A DNA stretch of 64,000 bases from Ramazzottius varieornatus (GCA_001949185.1 BDGG01000003.1:2421663-2485662), one strand, 5' to 3'; numbered from the stretch's first letter, positions 5,292-33,129 are shown. Notes: generated from the letters alone by a model not told the origin. A program made the numbers and translations.

Positions 5292-8200
5292 ATGTCGCCT
5301 CATTATACGACTGGTACCGGAAATGCTACCTGGCACCTGCTGATCGTGTTCTTGAGCGCGTTGGGATTTATCGACTGCATAGCTGGTCAAAACATTTTCC
5401 AAGCTATCGAGCGGGTCTATAATGGTACGGATGAATGAACAATGGGACGCGCGAGCTAGCAAGTCACAAGTGGACGGAAGACAGTAAAGTTTTTTTCCGT
5501 TGTAGCGGAAAGCCACTGTTGCGGGGATCTGGGATGTTTCGATGTGGTTGGCGCATTTCTGGACTTACTGAAAAGGTGTTGGAAATAATCCAAACTTTAA
5601 AACTAGAGACCACGAGAGACTGACATCACACCTGTTCTGTTAGGCCGATCAATCCACTCCCGTCCTGCGAAAACCACATCAAGTTCACGTTGAAGACACA
5701 GGACAACATCAATGAACCGGACATCCTGAACCCTCTGGACCTTCACTCCATCAACAAATCCCACTTCCGTAGCGATCGGGATGGTGTGAAAGTACTGATA
5801 CACGGGTACATCGACGACGGTCGCGCCCCCTGGATAGCGGTATCGCTTTTTTTCACTTTCGTGAAAATGGTTTCTTCTTTGAGTAATCCGGCGACCAAGC
5901 TGGTTCATCCTCCTTCGACAGGCCATGGAGCCACGATTGCTTCTTCAAGGAGACTACAACGTTATCACAGCGGACTGGAGTACCGGTGTGTCTATACCAT
6001 ACTTCCAAGCGGCTTCCAACACTCGAGTGGTCGGCGCGGAAGTAGCGAGGCTGATCCGGGTACTGAGAACAAAATTCGGCCAGAACTATCGGAAGATTCA
6101 CATAATCGGACACAGGTAAATGGCATCGAAAATCAAGTATGGGGTTGAACGCATCATTCAACCTTCCGTCGGTGCTAGTCTGGGAGCCCATGTCGCCGGG
6201 TACGCCGGCAAACTGGAACGAGTAGGACGAGTATCGGGGTTGGACCCAGCCGGTAAGCGAAAGAACTGCTTGTCCACTTCCGGGTTTGCGGGCTGGTCAA
6301 AGTGTCCACTTCCATAGGTATATATTTCTCCGGCATGCCGTCAGCTGCCCGACTTGATGCGGGAGATGCCGACTTTGGTAAGCAGGCGGATTACTAAGCT
6401 GTTTCATCTACCGATGGGTGGTACTTTTAGCCTCCTGGCCAACCCATCCAACATTCTTTATGGATTCGTTTACGGCCACAGTTCTTAGTTCGCGAGGCGG
6501 TTAACTTGGCCGTTTTAGAAAGTTAAGATCAGCTCTTGATCATCCCGCTACGGGGGAAGATCAACTGATAGGATCTCTGATCCTCAGTATGTAGCTTGTA
6601 CGATCCTCCACACAGTCGTACGCGTGAATCCGTCCCGGGTAGTGAGCACGCGGCAGACCGGCCAATCAACGNNNNNNNNNNNNNNNNNNNNNNNNNNNNN
6701 NNNNNNNNNNNNNNNNNNNNNACTACCCGGGACGATTTCACGCGTGTGGAGGATCGTACATACTGAGGATCAGAGATCCTATCAGTTGATCACCTCCGTA
6801 GCGGGATGATTAAGAGCTGATCTTAACTTTCTAAAACGGCCAAGTTAACCGCCTCGCGAACTAAGAACTGTGGCCGTAAACGAATCCATAAAGAATGTTG
6901 GATCGATTGGCCAGGAGGCTGAAAGTACCACTCATCGGTAGATGAAACAGAGCTTAGCGTTGTTTTTCCTTCCATCAAAGCGCAACTTCAACTGAGTAGC
7001 GCTATTATCAAATTCTCATGCTTTACAGTGGATACCATTATAACGGATGGCCGAGTATGTACGTATAAGCTTTCTCAAGCAACTACTTATGGGACCGGGT
7101 TTTCGCTGTGGAGAATATAGGGCTACTTTTCCAGGATATTCTGCAACTAGGATACGGGACGCTGCAGCCGTTGGGCCATACAAGTATGACCGGTGACATC
7201 AAGGCGCTGATTATCTGATCAAGCTCGATGGTTTGACATGCTTTTCTTCGCTGCAGATTTTTATCCTAACGGAGGCAGGGAACAACCCGGATGTGAAAAG
7301 AGGCAGGCATGATTAGGGGTGTGACGTTCCGTTATATGCTTGAGCTTTCAGCCTCATAACGTCGATCTGGGATCCTTTTATATTACTCCATATTTCATAT
7401 ATTTTATATTCTTGCGCTTTCATATTTAGTTTATTTATATGCTTGCGCTTTTAGCCTCATAACATCGATCTGGGATTCTTTGATGGGAACCGGCGCGCAT
7501 ACTGGTAAGCTAGTCGGAAATCAAGTACCAGTTTTCGTTTCTGCTCTGGGATAAATTTCGGACTTTAATCTAGGGGTTCAAAACGACGTACTGGGTTGTA
7601 GCCACTACAGGGCGTCATTGCTCTTCATTGGTAAGAAGATTCTAAAAAATGGGCGGAAATGATCAATTCATCGATGCGCGAACTTCCGTCTTTCATTCCA
7701 GAAACCGTCATCAATCCAGCTTGTGGGATGGTCGCTGTCAGATGTGGAACTTACGCAGAGGTAATATTCGGACATTCGAACCATATAGCCATGGACCTAT
7801 GCGTTTTTTCTGCGTACAGGTGTATTTTCGCCCCATTTATAGTTCCGCAGCGGACAATGTTTTTCCTGCGAGACCAGCGACTGTCAAACGATGGGACTGA
7901 ATCTGCGCAACAAGAGTGAGGCTCAACGGGGCAATTATTACCTTTTGACGGGGTCATCTGCTCCTTATTGCGGTACGCGTACACATCATCCTTGAAAGTC
8001 AGATTGGCTACGGCGTTCTACATACCAAAACCCTCATCCTTTCGCACTTACAGTTCAAACTTTTCGGATCGAGTTGACCTTCTCTTCTGTCGCGAAGACC
8101 ACTGTAAGGATTGTACCCTTCCAAACCAAGAGTTGCCTGACGAGCATATTTGTTCTCTGTAGGAGCGTGGATACCTGAAAGTACAGCTACAGTACGAAAG

Positions 8201-19181: not shown

Positions 19182-19871
19182 TTAGCCTTGAGTGGGGAAT
19201 CGACTAATGAGCGCCAGGCCTAAAAGACTGAGCAATGCTAACTGGCCAAAATCCATACCGCCACTACTGCTACTGCTGCTGCTTCCACCTCCGCTGTTTC
19301 CATAAAAAGGCGGTGGGTAGTAACCGCCGTAGCCCCCTCCGAATCCGAATCCACCGCGATAGCCACCGCGGTCACTCAGGAGCAGAGCGAGCAAGAGGGC
19401 GTCGGTACTCCCTCCACCTCGGCCGAACCCTCCATAGCCGAACTGCCTCGCTTGACGGAGGATAGCTGTGGCATTGGCGTTGAGGCTTCCGTTGGCACGA
19501 AGGGTTTGTAGAAGTTCCGGTAGAGACGGGTTGGAGTTGGCGACGTCCACTCCGAATAGTCGAGTCAGCAACCGGTTGCGTTCCGTGGCATTGCCGAGAA
19601 TTTCATGAAGGCGAGCGGTGACGTTTGAGCTAATGTTAGCGAAAGGACTTACTGGCAGGTTGACTATAGGTTCGATGAGGACTGGGGAACTTCCACTGGA
19701 AACGCTACCGGCTGTCTCGACCACGTTAGATGAGTTGGTGATGACAATGTCCGAAGATTCATCGTCGTTTTCGACGGGGACGGATAGAATGGATGGGAGC
19801 AGAATGATTCCAGCCAGAAGGTAGCAACTGCATAGTTGAGATGGAAGTAACAGAAGGTTCCTGGTATGCAT
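19182..19871 (-). CDS. Secreted Gly-rich prepro-protein, FPTQG family copy 1 (most divergent pro-region)
   Basis: Signal peptide from Met at 19871, pro-region with many N-x-S/T sequons, RQAR|QFG, LLLALLLSDRG, ends LLGLALISRFPTQG-stop. Confidence 0.85.
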   Translation of the reverse strand: MHTRNLLLLPSQLCSCYLLAGIILLPSILSVPVENDDESSDIVITNSSNVVETAGSVSSGSSPVLIEPIVNLPVSPFANISSNVTARLHEILGNATERNRLLTRLFGVDVANSNPSLPELLQTLRANGSLNANATAILRQARQFGYGGFGRGGGSTDALLLALLLSDRGGYRGGFGFGGGYGGYYPPPFYGNSGGGSSSSSSSGGMDFGQLALLSLLGLALISRFPTQG

Positions 19872-20835
19872 GTCGGCCAGAGAACCTTGTGGAGACCTTA
19901 CGGATGACCACTGAAAGCGAAAGAAAGTTGGCTGTTTAAAACCGAAAGGTATAAGTCGTCCCCTTATATTACTGTTGGTGAGTAGTGAGTACCATGCATG
20001 ATTCTCCGTTGCACTCTTCCGCATCGCTCCACTTCGTTTGTGGAGTATTTAAAGATTCTGTCAATCGAACTGCTGTGGACTTTTCCGCATGTGAAGACAT
20101 GGTTCGCGTTCCATCGATGGTACCTTAGCCGAAGACGGGGTATCAGTGATGGGTAACTCTCACTGAAGTTTCACTTTTCGACGGTAGAAGAAACGTAAGA
20201 GAGAAGGGAGCTTAGCCCACTAACCGCATAGCGAACCGGTGTACATTCTCATATGCGTTGTATGCTTGGTTTGTCGCACTATCGAACACACGGTGTTTGA
20301 TGGTGAAGCAAGTTTTAATTAGATCAAAGATCGTTCTTGTTTTTTGGATTGGATATCTCGCTCTCAGTGAACATATTGCACCGGGTGAGTTTGTTGCTGT
20401 GGCTTAGACTGTTTGCACTGTGTTTTCAGGCTTCTGTAGTACTAAGCTGCTCTTGGGACGGGGTACAGGATCATATTTTTCCCACGCTGAGAAGCCGTAA
20501 ATTTTACTCCTGGAAAGTCGTAGAAGAGCTTAAGAAGAGATGAGAAAAACCGGAGGAAGGGAAAGCAGGGATGAAGGAGATCAGAGAACGTATTAAGAAA
20601 GTATCCCTGCTACCAATAATAAGTATTAATCAAATTAGAATTAATACATCAATACATATTTTTGGCAATGAGAGATGCATGCCACTTGGAGCCGATTGTC
20701 GGAGGAGAGAGGAACAAATGGAAATTTGGGTTTGGAATGTTGAAATCCACAGCGGAGGGGCACAATCACAATGAGCAGGTACGAAGGTTTGGACCAAAAT
20801 ATACCATTGAGACTGGCTCGATTTCCTGCAGTGGT

Positions 20836-21390
20836 TTATCCTTGTGTAGGGAATCGAGAAATGACAGCAAGACCCAGGAGAATCAACGGCAGCAATGTGG
20901 ATAAGTCGTTCGAGTTGTTGTCGGTCGAAGGAGCAGGAGCGGGAGCCGGTGCAGGGACGACTATGGGTCCGGAACCGCCCCAGCCACCGAATCCGCCACG
21001 CCCACCAAATCCATCACGATCTCGGACCAACAAAGCGAGTAACAATGGACTGATGCCTCCTCCTCCTCCGAAACCACCGCCGAATCCACCACCGAACCCG
21101 AAACCAGGGAATCCAAACTGTTTGGCTTCCCGAAGACTGACGTTAGAATGGGCCAAGGTCTGGTTCATCAGGGTATGTAACTCCGAGGCGTTCATAGACT
21201 TAAGCTTGTTGATCACGGCTTCCTGTGGGGAACCTTTGGTAATGTTCAAGGCCGCCATGAGTTGCTCGGGGGACATCTTTGTAGGATCAAGGAGAGAAGC
21301 ACTGGCTGGGGGAGCGGGAAGGGTTAGTCCATGGACGCAGATGCCCATCACGGCGAAGGCGGAAAGCGTCACGTAGAGCCGTGACGACAT
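20836..21390 (-). CDS. Secreted Gly-rich prepro-protein, FPTQG family copy 2
   Basis: Signal peptide, pro-domain NITKGSPQEAVINKLKSMNASELHTLMNQT, REAK|QFG, Gly/Phe repeats, PAPAPAP, ends LLGLAVISRFPTQG-stop. Confidence 0.9.
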   Translation of the reverse strand: MSSRLYVTLSAFAVMGICVHGLTLPAPPASASLLDPTKMSPEQLMAALNITKGSPQEAVINKLKSMNASELHTLMNQTLAHSNVSLREAKQFGFPGFGFGGGFGGGFGGGGGISPLLLALLVRDRDGFGGRGGFGGWGGSGPIVVPAPAPAPAPSTDNNSNDLSTLLPLILLGLAVISRFPTQG

Positions 21391-21465
21391 TGTGGGTGAT
21401 CGCTGGAAGACGCCGAGAAAGGAAGTGGTGCTAGACTGTAGTGGATGGTTTGTGTTACGTAAGTT

Positions 21466-21473
21466 ATTTTATA
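21466..21473 (-). promoter_or_regulatory. Probable TATA box of FPTQG copy 2
   Basis: TATAAAA on the minus strand ~80 nt upstream of the ATG. TATA-like hexamers occur at similar distances before copies 3 (near 22988) and 4 (near 24230). Confidence 0.5.
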
Positions 21474-22267
21474 TGGCTGCCTCTGGTAGAGCAAACTTGG
21501 GACCGGAGGTTTGCACCGAACAGAAGATCTGGTCGTATGCGGAGCAACGACTTTGCACGACGAAGAACCAAGGCATACGGGACGATAAACATATTCTTCT
21601 CCGAGAGTCTTGATGGTTCGTTGGACGCGATCACAAAGAACCGGTATGGCGGGAGGGTGCGTTAGATACGAGCGCGGCAGGTTCTCTGGTCTCGGTGATT
21701 GACTGCAGCTGCAGATCTGCAGTCGACATTGGTCATTTCGCTTTGATATTTTCGATCATTCATCCTTCAAGTTAGTTTTATTGGTGTTTTTCACCGAGTA
21801 AGAAACATCTACGCAGAACGTATCGAAGCACTCCAGTTATTACTTGGAGGACATGGGAACAAACATAACATTAGCTCCAGCTGAGATGCCCGGATGTTGG
21901 GTCTTCACGATATGGAACCGGTGGTACTCTGTCTGGATCACTATCGAAGGCTGGGAGCCCGGGATGGATGGAGCCTGTTTCGGCGGTTGAGTTCGGTTTA
22001 TTCGTTATTGTCAACCACTCGTCGCAGCTAGTATCCTAATGGCATCAATCGAGTTCTTCGTTCAAGGTTTAATGAGAAAACAGGAAAGAGAAATGAGCAA
22101 TCGAAAAGTAGAATTTGAGAAAGAAATATGCGGCGAACCGAAAAGAAAACGATGATCAGACCCAGAAACTATGATTAACGCAGAGAGGAAAGGGGTATAA
22201 ACGAAACACCATGAACCAAAGCAGACGGTCAAAAATGTGAAGACTCCTAGAGATCAAATATCGTGGG

Positions 22268-22287
22268 CAGAGAGAGAGAGAGAGAGA
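22268..22287. repeat. (AG)n microsatellite
   Basis: About nine AG units. Confidence 0.8.
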
Positions 22288-22363
22288 TATACACAAAAAT
22301 TTAAACCAATGCGGAATTCGGTGAAGAAAAAACTAACAACGCTTGCTGCAGATCCGTCAAGAC

Positions 22364-22879
22364 TTAACCTTGGGTGGGGAATCTGGAAATCACAGCAAGA
22401 CCCAGCAGAGTAAGGGCGGCGAAAGCAGCCAGGTCGTCATTACCGCCACCGCTCGGCGAGGGCGCAGGAGCAGGCGGGGGAGCTGGCATGAATATGGGAG
22501 AACCTCCACCGGCACCACCACCGTATCCACCACCGTATCCACGGTCTCGGATCAACAGAGCCAGCAGCAGCGGAGAGATATTTCCATCACCAGACCCGCC
22601 ATAGCCAAACATTCTACCCTCTCGTGACGTAGAGTTCCCGCCTAAATGCGCCATGGTCTGGTTCATCAATGTGTGAAGTTCCGATGCATTCATCGCTCTC
22701 AATTTATTCAGCATAGCTTCTTCGGGCGAACCCTTGGTGACATTGAGCATGGACATGATGTGGTCGGGTGTGAAGGACGAAAGGGAAGCCGCTGGAGCTT
22801 GCTTGGATGTGGTAAGCCCATTCACGGAAAGAGTGAGGACCACGAAGGCCGAAAGCGTCACGTAGAGTAGTGAAAACAT
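22364..22879 (-). CDS. Secreted Gly-rich prepro-protein, FPTQG family copy 3
   Basis: MFSLLYVTLSAFVVLTLSVNG signal peptide, same pro-domain as copy 2, REGR|MFG, SPLLLALLIRDRG, ends LLGLAVISRFPTQG-stop. Confidence 0.9.
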   Translation of the reverse strand: MFSLLYVTLSAFVVLTLSVNGLTTSKQAPAASLSSFTPDHIMSMLNVTKGSPEEAMLNKLRAMNASELHTLMNQTMAHLGGNSTSREGRMFGYGGSGDGNISPLLLALLIRDRGYGGGYGGGAGGGSPIFMPAPPPAPAPSPSGGGNDDLAAFAALTLLGLAVISRFPTQG

Positions 22880-23687
22880 GCCGAAAGTTACAAGCAGCCT
22901 CTGTTTCTCCAACAGTAAGACTTCCGCTAGCTGAGAAAAGAGAAACGGACACTAGAAACCTAAGTAATGATTAGAACCCAGATACCTTATATCACAGCAC
23001 CAGGGTTGCTGAATAATTTCAGCAGAAACAGGACCAGCAACCAAGCTCGCGGTACCGGAGAACCATGGTCCATGGGCCTGAATTCACTCTCTTATGATCA
23101 CTATAGCGACCTAATTTCCATTGCGTCGCACTGATGTTGTGCTCGTACATCAACTATTGATCACTGAAAGTTCGCTGAGCTTTCCGGTATTGATCAATTT
23201 TCCCGCGGTATGTGGAATCAAAATCGGCTGCTCTCGTCCATCCTTGCTGTCGTCAAGCGTGTAAATTTGAGTTTCCACGTCTTCGGCTATCCTGGGGAGT
23301 GGGGCATGCGGGCGGCACGTTGGAGATCGTCCGTCAGGTTCTTCGATCATTATCTGCTTCGAATGCAAATGGAACTGGATGCTGCTGTATCTAGTGAGAA
23401 GTCATATTCAATTTGATCTCGGAAGCCCCGTCAACTTGATCATCACAGAGTCGTAAACATGTTTGAAAGAAGACCGAAACCAAAAAAAAGTAAGACGAAA
23501 AAAACGAGATAAGCCAGAAAAGTACAGCTTGAAATGGAAGGCCGATGAGAATAGGACTGAAAATAGTAAGAGCTTCAAGCGTAATACGTCTGTAGGTGTT
23601 AGAAAGATAGGAAACCAAGAACACACCGCAAAGATGTAAAAAAAACCATTTGCTTGCAGAGAAGACCCAATAGTTCGGCGGTTTATC

Positions 23688-24140
23688 TCAACCCTGAGTG
23701 GGGAACCGGGAGATCAAAGCCAGACCCAAAATCGTGACAGCGGTTAAGGTTGCAAAGTCATCACCTCCACCAAAACTGGGCGCTGGTGCGGGAGCTGGGG
23801 AAAAGATGGATCCACCACCAAATCCCCCAAAGAACAATGGCAGCAAAAACGGTAAGAATGCATCCCATTGTTTGCCTTCTCGTAGCAAAGTGAAGTTCCC
23901 GCCGATACGTATCATAGTCTGGTTCATCAGCGTGTGGAGCTCGGTGTCATTCATGGCTTTCAGTCTGTTCAACACGGCTTCCTGTGGCGAACCCTTGGTC
24001 ACGTTGAGCATGGACATAATCTGGTTGGGTGTCATGGGCGAATCCGAAGCCGCAGGAGCCTCTTTGGGGATGGTAAGACCATTTGCAGAAAGGGCGAGGA
24101 CAACGAAGGCTGAAAGTGTCACATACAGCACCGACGACAT
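23688..24140 (-). CDS. Secreted Gly-rich prepro-protein, FPTQG family copy 4
   Basis: MSSVLYVTLSAFVVLALSANG signal peptide, same pro-domain, REGK|QWD, ends ILGLALISRFPTQG-stop. Confidence 0.9.
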   Translation of the reverse strand: MSSVLYVTLSAFVVLALSANGLTIPKEAPAASDSPMTPNQIMSMLNVTKGSPQEAVLNRLKAMNDTELHTLMNQTMIRIGGNFTLLREGKQWDAFLPFLLPLFFGGFGGGSIFSPAPAPAPSFGGGDDFATLTAVTILGLALISRFPTQG

Positions 24141-24544
24141 GGTGCGATAGGAACTTTGGAACGATCTTTAATTCTTCGACTGTAAGACTAATGCTGGATT
24201 TGAGATGAGAAAGGAGAGATACCGGTACTTAAAACCTGCATGGCGGTCAAGCATCAGATACTTCGTGTTACGGGATTGAGCCTTCGTAATGTTTTTATAA
24301 GAAAAAAGGGACAACTTCGCCCATCTTGCGTCACATCGTTATTGAAGGACCCCGAACCTGCTTTTTTACGGTTCTTACATGTGGCTGATGGCGACCAAAC
24401 TCGTTTACGTTACATCTTTTACCGGTAATGTACCTATTACATATTCCTCTTCTTCCGGACTCATGGTTTTATGCTCGATGCAGTCAAAACATCACGGACA
24501 CGTTCCGTGGATCGTTAGCGCTGTCCTGTGGAAAGCGACTGATC

Positions 24545-24758
24545 TACACGCACGACGGGAAAATATGGGGCCAGTAAAAATTATGGGACCAGGCCTTTTC
24601 GCTACGGCGGTACGGAAGTACGTACGTAAGCGACCGATTCATAGTAATGCACTTTTGGACACTTTTCTACGTTTGAATTTCCATNNNNNNNNNNNNNNNN
24701 NNNNNNNNNNNNNNNNNNNNNNNNNNNNNNNNNNCCATAATCTCCCGTCGTGCGTGTA
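24545..24758. mobile_element. MITE-like element spanning an N-gap
   Basis: Terminal inverted repeats tacacgcacgacgggaaaatatgg / ccataatctcccgtcgtgcgtgta. Confidence 0.6.
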
Positions 24759-32121: not shown

Positions 32122-33129
32122 ATGACAATGGAAATATTGCTGCCTTTGATGGCCGTCTTCTTCTGTACGAAATTTCCAACCCCGAACGCGCTACCTCTGG
32201 ATAAAATGTTGCTGAACGTTAATACTTATCATTCTAATGTCCGCAGTGATCACATGGCGAACCACTTACCTCCTGTAAAGCCATCGGACTCGAACTCCAA
32301 GATCTTATCTGGGTTGCTGAAAATGATCTCAAAGACCTCAACTCTTGGTACTTCGAGCAACTCATCCTTCACAATGGACGATTTCCGCCGGAATATCCTA
32401 CAAAGCCTTCAAGTACTCAACAGATCTCTGGAAAACACCAGCCACACTACACTCTCAAACTTCCCTTCAGATGTTTCACTGAACCTAACCATGTCTGAAA
32501 CGTCCGAAGAGATGAGAAAGGGGCTCACGACGGCTTTGCAGCATGACGAAACAAGAACCCGAATTGCGCGGTTCGTGAACCCGGTTTTGCTCAAGCTACT
32601 GCTAGATTACAGCAGCTTTCCCCGAAGACCCTTCATCCCTCCGGCAGTTCAAAATGGAGGGCTGTCGGAAAGGGGAAAGATCGACCTAGCACTGATTGGG
32701 TCCTTCACCCTACTTGGACTGGCCATCATAGCCACATTTCCGGTCCAACAACCGGCGCCATCAGTTGTTGTAATGAATCAAGTGAATGCGCATGAAAAAC
32801 ACATTGCGCCACCTAGCGGATCTTGGACGAGTGCACCGGAAGTTGGCCTGAACTATGCCAGCGCCACGCACAGCTCTAAAGAAGGAAACTTCGATGAGGA
32901 CGCAAGTACAGAGCAACCTTACGAGACGGAAATCATTAGCGATGACGATGAGGACTCTGAATATGAAACCACAACACCGTTACAATACGAGACTACACAA
33001 TTTGAGGATCTCAGTCCGCAGTTCCTGAAAGTCCTGGTTTCGTTCGTCAATCATGAGCCGGTGCAAGTTGATGTGGTTAACGAGGGCGACTTTATGGCTA
33101 ACTATACTTACCGGGAACCAAGACTGTGA
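32122..33129 (+). CDS. Secreted protein, divergent and C-terminally extended relative of the FPTQG family
   Basis: Signal-like N-terminus, sequon-rich pro-region, RIAR|FVN, LLKLLLD, DLALIGSFTLLGLAIIATFPVQQ, then an acidic Thr-rich extension; AATAAA follows at ~33220. Confidence 0.8.
   Translation: MTMEILLPLMAVFFCTKFPTPNALPLDKMLLNVNTYHSNVRSDHMANHLPPVKPSDSNSKILSGLLKMISKTSTLGTSSNSSFTMDDFRRNILQSLQVLNRSLENTSHTTLSNFPSDVSLNLTMSETSEEMRKGLTTALQHDETRTRIARFVNPVLLKLLLDYSSFPRRPFIPPAVQNGGLSERGKIDLALIGSFTLLGLAIIATFPVQQPAPSVVVMNQVNAHEKHIAPPSGSWTSAPEVGLNYASATHSSKEGNFDEDASTEQPYETEIISDDDEDSEYETTTPLQYETTQFEDLSPQFLKVLVSFVNHEPVQVDVVNEGDFMANYTYREPRL

Follow-up and report, generated by a model that had tools for sequence, protein, structure and literature searches.

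In syndecans and FXYD regulators, a signal peptide is followed by an ectodomain that varies and is in part disordered or glycosylated, and conservation peaks in the membrane segment and in a very short C-terminal tail. PrP and Shadoo have a signal peptide and N-glycosylation, together with a Gly-rich low-complexity region, a short internal hydrophobic block, and a C-terminal hydrophobic segment. Among the ecdysozoan apical-matrix precursors, nematode cuticle collagens are cut by BLI-4 and the ZP-domain cuticlins have a furin site ahead of their C-terminal anchor; these precursors are membrane associated, place an R-x-x-R site beside a Gly-rich assembly region, are highly expressed, and form tandem families. 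The Caenorhabditis NLP/caenacin peptides and the Gly-rich peptides of arthropods are secreted, Gly/aromatic-rich, lineage-restricted products of tandem clusters. In tardigrades, families that are restricted to the phylum and highly transcribed are the main candidate source of its unusual biology, and to our knowledge the few that are known (CAHS, SAHS, MAHS, Dsup, and some others) include no Gly-rich extracellular protein that is tethered to the membrane or processed.

Within a 64,000-nucleotide stretch of the Ramazzottius varieornatus genome (here called the window), four adjacent genes, all on the minus strand, encode products of 229, 184, 171, and 150 amino acids that share, in part by prediction, the features just listed with each of these systems. 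Their common layout runs from a putative signal peptide through a helical domain rich in sequons and a single R-x-x-[R/K] site to a disordered, Gly/aromatic-rich stretch containing a Leu block, and ends in a tail. The comparison with syndecans and FXYD regulators is by description only. The tardigrade family differs from those proteins in lacking the FXYD and EFYA motifs and any GAG attachment logic, shows no sequence similarity to them, and has a shorter hydrophobic run (12 to 15 residues); its conserved R-x-x-[R/K] site and Leu block are without counterpart in them. Profile searches gave no homology to PrP or Shadoo, and the tardigrade tail, for which GPI attachment is putative, differs from theirs in being invariant in sequence and in having seven polar residues at its end. 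Compared with the collagens and cuticlins, the tardigrade proteins lack Gly-X-Y repeats, a ZP domain, and Cys knots, their site precedes the Gly-rich part on its N-terminal side, and their putative anchor would stay with that part. The NLP/caenacin and arthropod precursors, in contrast, lack a glycosylated pro-domain, a Leu block, and a hydrophobic tail; the nematode antimicrobial peptides are surveyed in PMC10506718.

The basic sites, Leu blocks, and tails of the four genes were confirmed by translation at exact coordinates and are given here with the coding sequences.

19182-19871, minus strand: gene 1 coding sequence, 229 aa, subfamily B (ORF; RvY_07273)
19446-19457, minus strand: gene 1 basic site, RQAR (translation)
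19377-19400, minus strand: gene 1 Leu block (translation)
19182-19226, minus strand: gene 1 conserved tail, 14 codons plus stop (translation, DNA pattern)
20836-21390, minus strand: gene 2 coding sequence, 184 aa, subfamily A (ORF and transcript)
21121-21132, minus strand: gene 2 basic site, REAK (translation)
21025-21048, minus strand: gene 2 Leu block (translation)
20836-20880, minus strand: gene 2 conserved tail, 14 codons plus stop (translation, DNA pattern)
22364-22879, minus strand: gene 3 coding sequence, 171 aa, subfamily A (ORF; identical to database model P0001)
22613-22624, minus strand: gene 3 basic site, REGR (translation)
22550-22573, minus strand: gene 3 Leu block (translation)
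22364-22408, minus strand: gene 3 conserved tail, 14 codons plus stop (translation, DNA pattern)
23688-24140, minus strand: gene 4 coding sequence, 150 aa, subfamily A; its Gly-rich part is the shortest (ORF; identical to database model P0002)
23871-23882, minus strand: gene 4 basic site, REGK (translation)
23829-23852, minus strand: gene 4 Leu block (translation)
23688-23732, minus strand: gene 4 conserved tail, 14 codons plus stop (translation, DNA pattern)

The C-terminal end ...LGLA(L/V)ISRFPTQG is identical in the four products, and ISRFPTQG plus a stop codon closes all four ORFs. Searched for as a degenerate DNA pattern, the tail gave exactly four matches, all in these genes, against an expectation of 0 from 100 shuffles. 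ORFs, translations, and DNA pattern together bear out the four same-strand genes of one layout that an initial annotation had read from the DNA. As first called, the minus-strand ORFs ran from 19182-20024, 20836-21390, 22364-22912, and 23688-24140; the four genes stand, with two of their starts corrected. Gene 1 starts at ATG 19871 and not at 20024, because the RNA contigs end at 19911-19965, one of them with a 5' adaptor at 19937; the annotated N-terminal extension of RvY_07273 is unsupported, since the contigs reach no further. The orthologs P0005 and P0009 begin at the same Met. Gene 3 starts at ATG 22879; the ORF list had put its start at a TTG.

RNA contigs from runs of four studies resolved four separate, polyadenylated transcripts, one per gene, and no splice joint was present in any contig of genes 1 to 4. 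Every gene has a promoter and an unspliced polyadenylated mRNA of its own.

20490-21442, minus strand: gene 2 transcript with poly(A) tail (RNA contigs)
22054-22961, minus strand: gene 3 transcript with poly(A) tail (RNA contigs)
23395-24201, minus strand: gene 4 transcript with poly(A) tail and 5' adaptor (RNA contigs)
19964-19968, minus strand: TATAA box of gene 1, 31 nt upstream of the transcript 5' end
21473, minus strand: start of the TATA box of gene 2
22991, minus strand: start of the TATA box of gene 3

In genes 1 to 3 the TATA box precedes the transcript start by 30 to 31 nt. Judged by the orientation of their poly(A) tails, the transcripts come from the minus strand, and the tailed contigs with 5' adaptors confirm that the genes are real and expressed. 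ORFs that overlap the genes on the plus strand (e.g., 20771-21376 and 23698-24150) are the Gly-rich codons read in mirror image, which yields Pro-rich sequence.

The four genes belong to a family of small, predicted glycoproteins of the secretory pathway that is confined to tardigrades and has no earlier description. Seven members are encoded in the R. varieornatus genome: besides genes 1 to 4 there are a relative of 335 aa at a distance of 8 kb and, on another contig (C1), two genes of two exons each. The C1 genes require one intron each, their exons having been joined computationally to test reading-frame compatibility, so that the term "intronless" used in the initial annotation fits genes 1 to 4 but is not a rule of the family. 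Domain order is common to all members, and the sequons, basic site, Leu block, and tail are conserved. All named homologs are eutardigrade proteins, from Hypsibius and Paramacrobiotus, where members are also clustered. A profile search of 1.84 billion representative proteins returned only tardigrade or unnamed relatives, with no nematode or arthropod member, apart from three long matches (P0015, P0017, and P0020) that were rejected as bacterial proteins with Gly-rich linkers matching by low complexity.

The family had not been recognized when first read, and our searches agree that it matches nothing characterized. No Pfam family was found for genes 1 to 4, the fifth relative, or three Hypsibius members, which gave only sub-threshold low-complexity matches; those to plant GRP (PF07172) and keratin type II head (PF16208) scored 12 to 19 bits against Pfam cutoffs of 28 to 30 bits. 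The UniRef label of the Hypsibius ortholog P0003, SXP/RAL-2 (Ani s 5), was rejected, there being no Pfam match for it at E values up to 1, and the window proteins gave no SXP/RAL-2 match in Pfam at E values up to 10. A profile search of the PDB found nothing meaningful (best E value, 0.096), leaving the family with no solved structure there, and the ESM Atlas yielded no usable feature match, with structural rows at a TM of at most 0.32. A word search with the tail only (gene 1 residues 186 to 229) over 5.8 billion sequences gave 81 candidates, of which only self passed; the search is uninformative, because a motif of 16 residues is too short to become significant among so many sequences. Neither the locus tags nor the tail motifs occurred in the literature searched, and the locus tags are absent from the supplement of Yoshida et al. 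2017. None of CAHS, SAHS, MAHS, LEAM, and Dsup is described with this architecture in that literature, nor does a 2026 review of tardigrade-specific families contain a family of such architecture (PMC13389832).

By inspection, the N termini have the features of a signal peptide: an n-region with Arg, a hydrophobic core of 15 to 20 residues, and small residues at −3/−1 (e.g., V-x-G before LT). AlphaFold2 predicted a helix at residues 3 to 21, covering this putative signal-peptide region, and entry of the products into the secretory pathway, as first proposed, is supported. After the signal peptide and ahead of the basic site, each gene encodes four to six N-x-S/T sequons, more than in composition-matched shuffles (p, 0.003 to 0.02 per gene), and these are aligned across members. 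The domain that carries them is well conserved within subfamily A, whereas between subfamilies it diverges beyond recognition while the tail module is fixed. The R-x-x-[R/K] site is single in most of the 16 aligned members, and in every one of them a site directly precedes the Gly-rich part. Its first Arg (P4) is invariant, upholding the claim that the site is conserved; at P1, 11 of these members have Arg and 5 have Lys, and x-[F/Y/W] follows the site in 15. Since the site occupies the same place in every member, convertase processing there is plausible. The N-terminal Gln that would be exposed by such a cut, correctly noted in three of the four copies here, does not extend to the family as a whole: 9 of the 16 aligned members have Gln at P1' and neither C1 gene does, about half of the 18, and the residue is otherwise M, N, G, S, or D.

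Purifying selection on the tail is strong (pN, 0 to 0.13; pS, 0.55 to 0.89), in keeping with the initial description of a freely varying middle and a frozen end, and the LGLAxI, P, and T of the tail are invariant across the three named genera. A terminal Gly is present in 16 of the 18 members; the two lacking it are Hypsibius gene models, P0016 (ending PTQ) and P0022 (ending PTS), and may be gene-model errors. A cytosolic tail does not account for this Gly. For gene 2, AlphaFold2 placed helices at residues 115 to 123 (the Leu block) and 161 to 178 (the tail) with disorder between them, in a model of low overall confidence (mean pLDDT, 57.5); besides the hydrophobic helices, the N-terminal helical domain was the sole part modeled with moderate confidence (pLDDT, 62 to 77). 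A bilayer-spanning segment has about 18 to 22 residues. The uninterrupted hydrophobic run of the tail has 12 to 15, which is marginal for a membrane span, as are the plain Hessa 2005 sums of the tail 19-mers (approximately +3 to +6 kcal/mol). The run is usually preceded by an acidic or amide residue (D/N/E/Q), or by Pro in a few members, and is followed by seven conserved polar residues that include an Arg (SRFPTQG).

The fifth relative differs from the four clustered genes in where its tail-like segment lies.

32122-33129, plus strand: fifth relative, 335 aa, with a Leu block and an internal tail-like hydrophobic segment, then an acidic 126-aa extension

It was detected at an E value of 0.011 (hhalign, 88.8% over 28 columns), and its kinship with genes 1 to 4 rests on these 28 aligned columns plus the common layout. 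The tail-like segment has 18 residues and a hydrophobicity sum of +0.7, and the extension beyond it contains 24 D/E against 5 K/R. Motif and extension are both kept in an ortholog that is 54% identical. The AlphaFold2 model is of low confidence (mean pLDDT, 32.5) and unusable. Across the family the tail is a predicted helix of 12 to 15 hydrophobic residues, usually set between an acidic or amide residue and an Arg; with its counterpart internal in this relative, we favor a membrane tether.

We consider the frozen hydrophobic tail more likely to be a membrane anchor than the free amidated end of a peptide. The latter was the initial proposal: a convertase would free a soluble or membrane-active Gly-rich peptide of 60 to 95 aa with a lumenal FPTQ-amide C terminus and sometimes a pGlu N terminus, and the product would be antimicrobial or self-assembling. 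As of PMC7056985, tardigrades had no known antimicrobial peptide, so the niche for such a product is open. The conserved basic site and the widespread terminal Gly would suit it, as would the copper monooxygenase (PHM/DBH-type) and convertase P-domain genes in the genome, and a hydrophobic run so short and so near the C terminus may fail to stop translocation. However, about half of the members lack the P1' Gln, two models lack the Gly, and several have Lys at P1, which makes a poor convertase site. The product would be far longer than typical amidated peptides, the charge pattern of the tail is that of an anchor, and its homolog in the fifth relative is internal. The end-capped pGlu...FPTQ-amide design is therefore unsupported as it was stated, and we judge release of such a peptide improbable. 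That the cut yields a peptide whose invariant hydrophobic C terminus is lumenal and amidated, making a new end-capped self-assembling or membrane-active class, seems to us quite improbable; if true, tardigrades would have their first known family of effector-type peptides, whether antimicrobial or matrix-forming, and a correct peptide model would close the gap left by immune effectors as yet unknown in tardigrades. A plain membrane anchor had been named at the outset as a finding that would count against amidation, and the evidence comes close to one, short of proof.

There are two further readings. The last ~25 to 30 residues might be a GPI attachment signal that is removed by transamidase, so that the chain would be lipid anchored. 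The products have both an N-terminal signal peptide and a C-terminal hydrophobic run of a length typical of GPI signals and marginal for a true span, with small residues (S, G, N, A, D) upstream of the run, and a crude omega-site rule, small residues being expected 8 to 12 residues ahead of the run, gives a candidate in 15 of the 18 members. The constraint on GPI signals, though, is physicochemical and not one of exact sequence, and LGLAxI..P.T is invariant with synonymous sites near saturation, which is not the pattern of a property-only constraint. Seven conserved polar residues, Arg included, follow the run, three members (P0013, P0016, and P0021) have no acceptable omega triplet, and the fifth relative keeps the motif internally, where a GPI signal is impossible. 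We regard lipid anchoring as rather unlikely. Alternatively, the glycosylated helical N-terminal domain could itself be the product, a shed ligand or matrix factor, with the Gly-rich stalk and anchor serving as a membrane-bound precursor scaffold comparable to that of membrane-anchored growth-factor precursors. This domain ends exactly at the basic site, and its conservation within subfamily A and its moderate AlphaFold2 confidence are consistent with a product; its divergence between subfamilies beside a fixed tail module means that selection is strongest on the supposed scaffold, and we hold this reading to be very improbable. The genome also has a C13 peptidase (transamidase/legumain type), as a GPI signal would call for; with this peptidase, the copper monooxygenase, and the convertase P-domain genes all present, the processing machinery does not discriminate between the models.

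The explanation that we favor, tentatively and at somewhat less than even chances, is that these are small secretory-pathway glycoproteins tethered by a C-terminal helix in type I orientation, with a role as a cell-surface or apical-matrix coat; that role is a guess. A cleavable signal peptide would direct the product into the ER, its N-terminal helical domain of 60 to 115 aa would be N-glycosylated, and a Golgi convertase may cut after R-x-x-[R/K], at the end of the N-terminal helix. What remains would be a disordered Gly/aromatic/Pro-rich chain of 60 to 95 aa with a short Leu helix, tethered through its conserved C-terminal helix, beyond which the seven residues SRFPTQG would face the cytosol. 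Were such a chain to coat cells or cuticle, it could bear on barrier function or desiccation; the family is an orphan with a strongly constrained module. The sequence-specific conservation of helix and tail suggests a fixed partner, one that the helix packs against or that sorts it. Positive charge is expected on the cytosolic flank of a type I single-pass protein, and 15 of the 16 aligned members have an Arg after the hydrophobic run.

The window contains four minus-strand ORFs with the same eight C-terminal residues and stop codon. A degenerate DNA pattern for this tail matched the window exactly four times, always at these ORFs, where 100 shuffles gave an expectation of 0. Across the genome (55.8 Mb), a tail-type pattern occurred at six places and a control pattern at none. 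A search of the genome with a family profile found seven loci: the four tandem genes, a fifth relative on the opposite strand, and two neighbors on another contig, C1. The members in the window are as follows.

19182-19871, minus strand, gene 1, 229 aa
20836-21390, minus strand, gene 2, 184 aa
22364-22879, minus strand, gene 3, 171 aa
23688-24140, minus strand, gene 4, 150 aa
32122-33129, plus strand, fifth relative, 335 aa, found by the family profile search; same Leu block, tail-like motif internal

Alignment of genes 1 to 4 bore out the layout proposed in the initial annotation. A hydrophobic N terminus is followed by a sequon-rich region, a single basic site (RQAR, REAK, REGR, and REGK, respectively), a Gly/aromatic-rich stretch that includes the Leu block, a linker (Pro/Ala or Ser), and the tail. 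Each sequon-rich region has four to six N-x-S/T sequons, an enrichment relative to shuffled sequences (P = 0.003 to 0.02). Long Pro-rich plus-strand ORFs antisense to the genes (20771-21376, 22374-22604, and 23698-24150) were rejected as genes, being mirror images of GGN-rich codons. Two runs of 50 Ns (6672-6721 and 24685-24734) represent assembly gaps; upstream of gene 4, the distance to the second is about 550 bp.

Genes 1 to 4 are real genes. In contig sets from four different studies (12 to 27 Mb each, transcriptome-like against a 56-Mb genome), every gene was covered by its own separate contig piece without joints, so that the genes are transcribed and, as had been annotated, intronless. 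The poly(A) tails of mRNAs from the minus strand show as T-runs ahead of 20490, 22054, and 23395, and the loose contig ends at 19937 and 24201 resemble, in our reading, a 5' adaptor added by template switching. In genes 1 to 3, a TATAA box precedes the 5' end of the contig by 30 to 31 nt; upstream of gene 4 (24141-24370, minus strand) there was none at −30, the nearest being at −98.

The transcript 5' ends fix the start codons, at 19871 for gene 1 and 22879 for gene 3. The public model of gene 1 (RvY_07273, P0006) is 278 aa long because an upstream exon extends it at the N terminus (19872-20024, minus strand). This extension is unsupported: the RNA contigs end at 19911-19965 with no joint, and the orthologues P0005 and P0009 begin at the Met encoded at 19871. 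The evidence therefore favors the 229-aa form, in which the signal peptide is N-terminal. The contig depth of gene 4 relative to the other genes varied strongly among runs, contig-derived depth being an unreliable measure. Runs X21 to X24 (same species label, 2022-2023 studies) contained next to no words of the 5.6-kb cluster stretch, although their contig sets were similar in size; expression limited to certain stages or conditions may account for this, as may another type of library.

The contig C1 pair lies in tandem (L005 798-1683 and L006 760-1689, at about 1.877-1.879 Mb), each gene split over two ORFs. The first carries the signal peptide, sequons, R-x-x-R site, and Gly-rich block, and the second the Leu block, linker, and tail. 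With splice sites predicted from sequence, introns of 280 and 204 nt bounded by canonical GT..AG restore the frame. In each gene a single intron thus appears to sit precisely where the Gly-rich block meets the Leu-block/tail unit, so that this conserved unit acts as a module.

Searched exhaustively with a profile, 1.84 billion representative proteins gave 20 hits. The named relatives are all eutardigrade and are labeled hypothetical or misnamed; these are BV898_14949/14950/14951 on one contig and BV898_11635/11637 on another in Hypsibius exemplaris, and two records from Paramacrobiotus metropolitanus. Three long hits, bacterial proteins with Gly-rich linkers, were rejected. Pfam yielded no matching family, the PDB no relative, and the ESM Atlas no lead; neither the locus tags nor the tail motif occurred in any paper found by literature search. 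The family was thus rightly called unrecognized, and no characterized family emerged from the Pfam, PDB, or profile searches. A 2026 review of tardigrade-specific genes describes nothing of the kind (PMC13389832). The UniRef label of BV898_14949 (P0003), "SXP/RAL-2 family protein Ani s 5," looks spurious, since this protein has no Pfam match at E values up to 1. In a maximum likelihood tree, genes 2 to 4 formed one group (support 86/85), which points to triplication in the Ramazzottius lineage, and joined BV898_14949 (98/97). The partner of gene 1 was a close orthologue (100/99), within a subfamily to which BV898_14951 also belongs.

In the alignment of 16 members, the columns without any variation are those of the start Met, the basic site's first Arg, and the tail's L-G-L-A-x-I and P-T. 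R-x-x-[R/K] directly precedes the Gly-rich part in every member and is the sole such site of the protein in most; in 15 of the 16, x-[F/Y/W] comes next. The variable Gly-rich middle and frozen tail noted initially were both evident: the Gly-rich parts vary freely in length and composition (21 to 42% Gly), and in the tails of genes 1 to 4 pN is 0 to 0.13. Since synonymous differences there are near saturation (pS, 0.55 to 0.89), tail identity reflects selection on the peptide and is not the product of recent conversion between genes or of an element at the DNA level.

In the fifth relative, the tail-like motif forms a hydrophobic segment of 18 residues in mid-protein (hhalign probability 88.8%, E = 2.5e-6, 28 columns). 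An R-x-x-R site and Leu block lie upstream, in the family order, and a 126-residue acidic extension follows (24 D/E versus 5 K/R). Orthologues are 92% and 54% identical. The latter keeps both motif and extension, indicating that the extension is real coding sequence and that the motif is conserved there as an internal segment.

AlphaFold2 with the family alignment gave a low-confidence model (mean pLDDT 57.5). Helices were predicted for the signal peptide, the Leu block (residues 115-123), the tail (161-178), and three stretches of the N-terminal domain, of which the final one stops at the basic site; disorder was predicted elsewhere. For the fifth relative, AlphaFold2 reached a pLDDT of 32.

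Our tentative preference is for a type I small glycoprotein, tethered to the membrane by the tail helix, whose precursor would undergo cleavage at the basic site, with a disordered Gly/aromatic chain then exposed at the surface of the cell or in the apical matrix. We favor an anchor because the tail is a predicted helix that usually has D/N/E before it and, in 15 of the 16 members aligned, is followed by Arg; because the homologous motif of the fifth relative is internal and is conserved, with its extension, in the 54%-identical orthologue; and because a hydrophobic helix conserved in its exact sequence is what a membrane segment packing against a partner would be expected to show. The uninterrupted hydrophobic run, only 12 to 15 residues, counts against a plain span, as do simple Hessa-scale sums of +3 to +6 kcal/mol for 19-mers. 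A surface-coat role is suggested by composition and by analogy with ecdysozoan matrix precursors.

That same short run would fit a GPI signal, and a crude rule finds a candidate omega site in 15 of 18 members. GPI anchoring nevertheless seems unlikely, as such signals do not usually have an invariant sequence, nor a hydrophobic run followed by seven polar residues that are conserved. The amidated free peptide initially proposed would explain the terminal Gly of 16 of 18 members. We regard it as more improbable still: only about half of the members have Gln at P1', five have Lys at P1, and two gene models end without the terminal Gly; moreover, amidated peptides are usually shorter than this product, and the motif is internal in the fifth relative. 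What stands of the initial interpretation is a secretory pro-protein of an unknown family with a plausible convertase site; the end-capped peptide is doubtful. The genome encodes machinery for all three fates, so its presence does not discriminate among them.

One Paramacrobiotus record (XP_055327400, P0007; 413 aa) contains two complete family units, each with a PTQG tail end, separated by other sequence; it is probably two neighboring genes fused by annotation.
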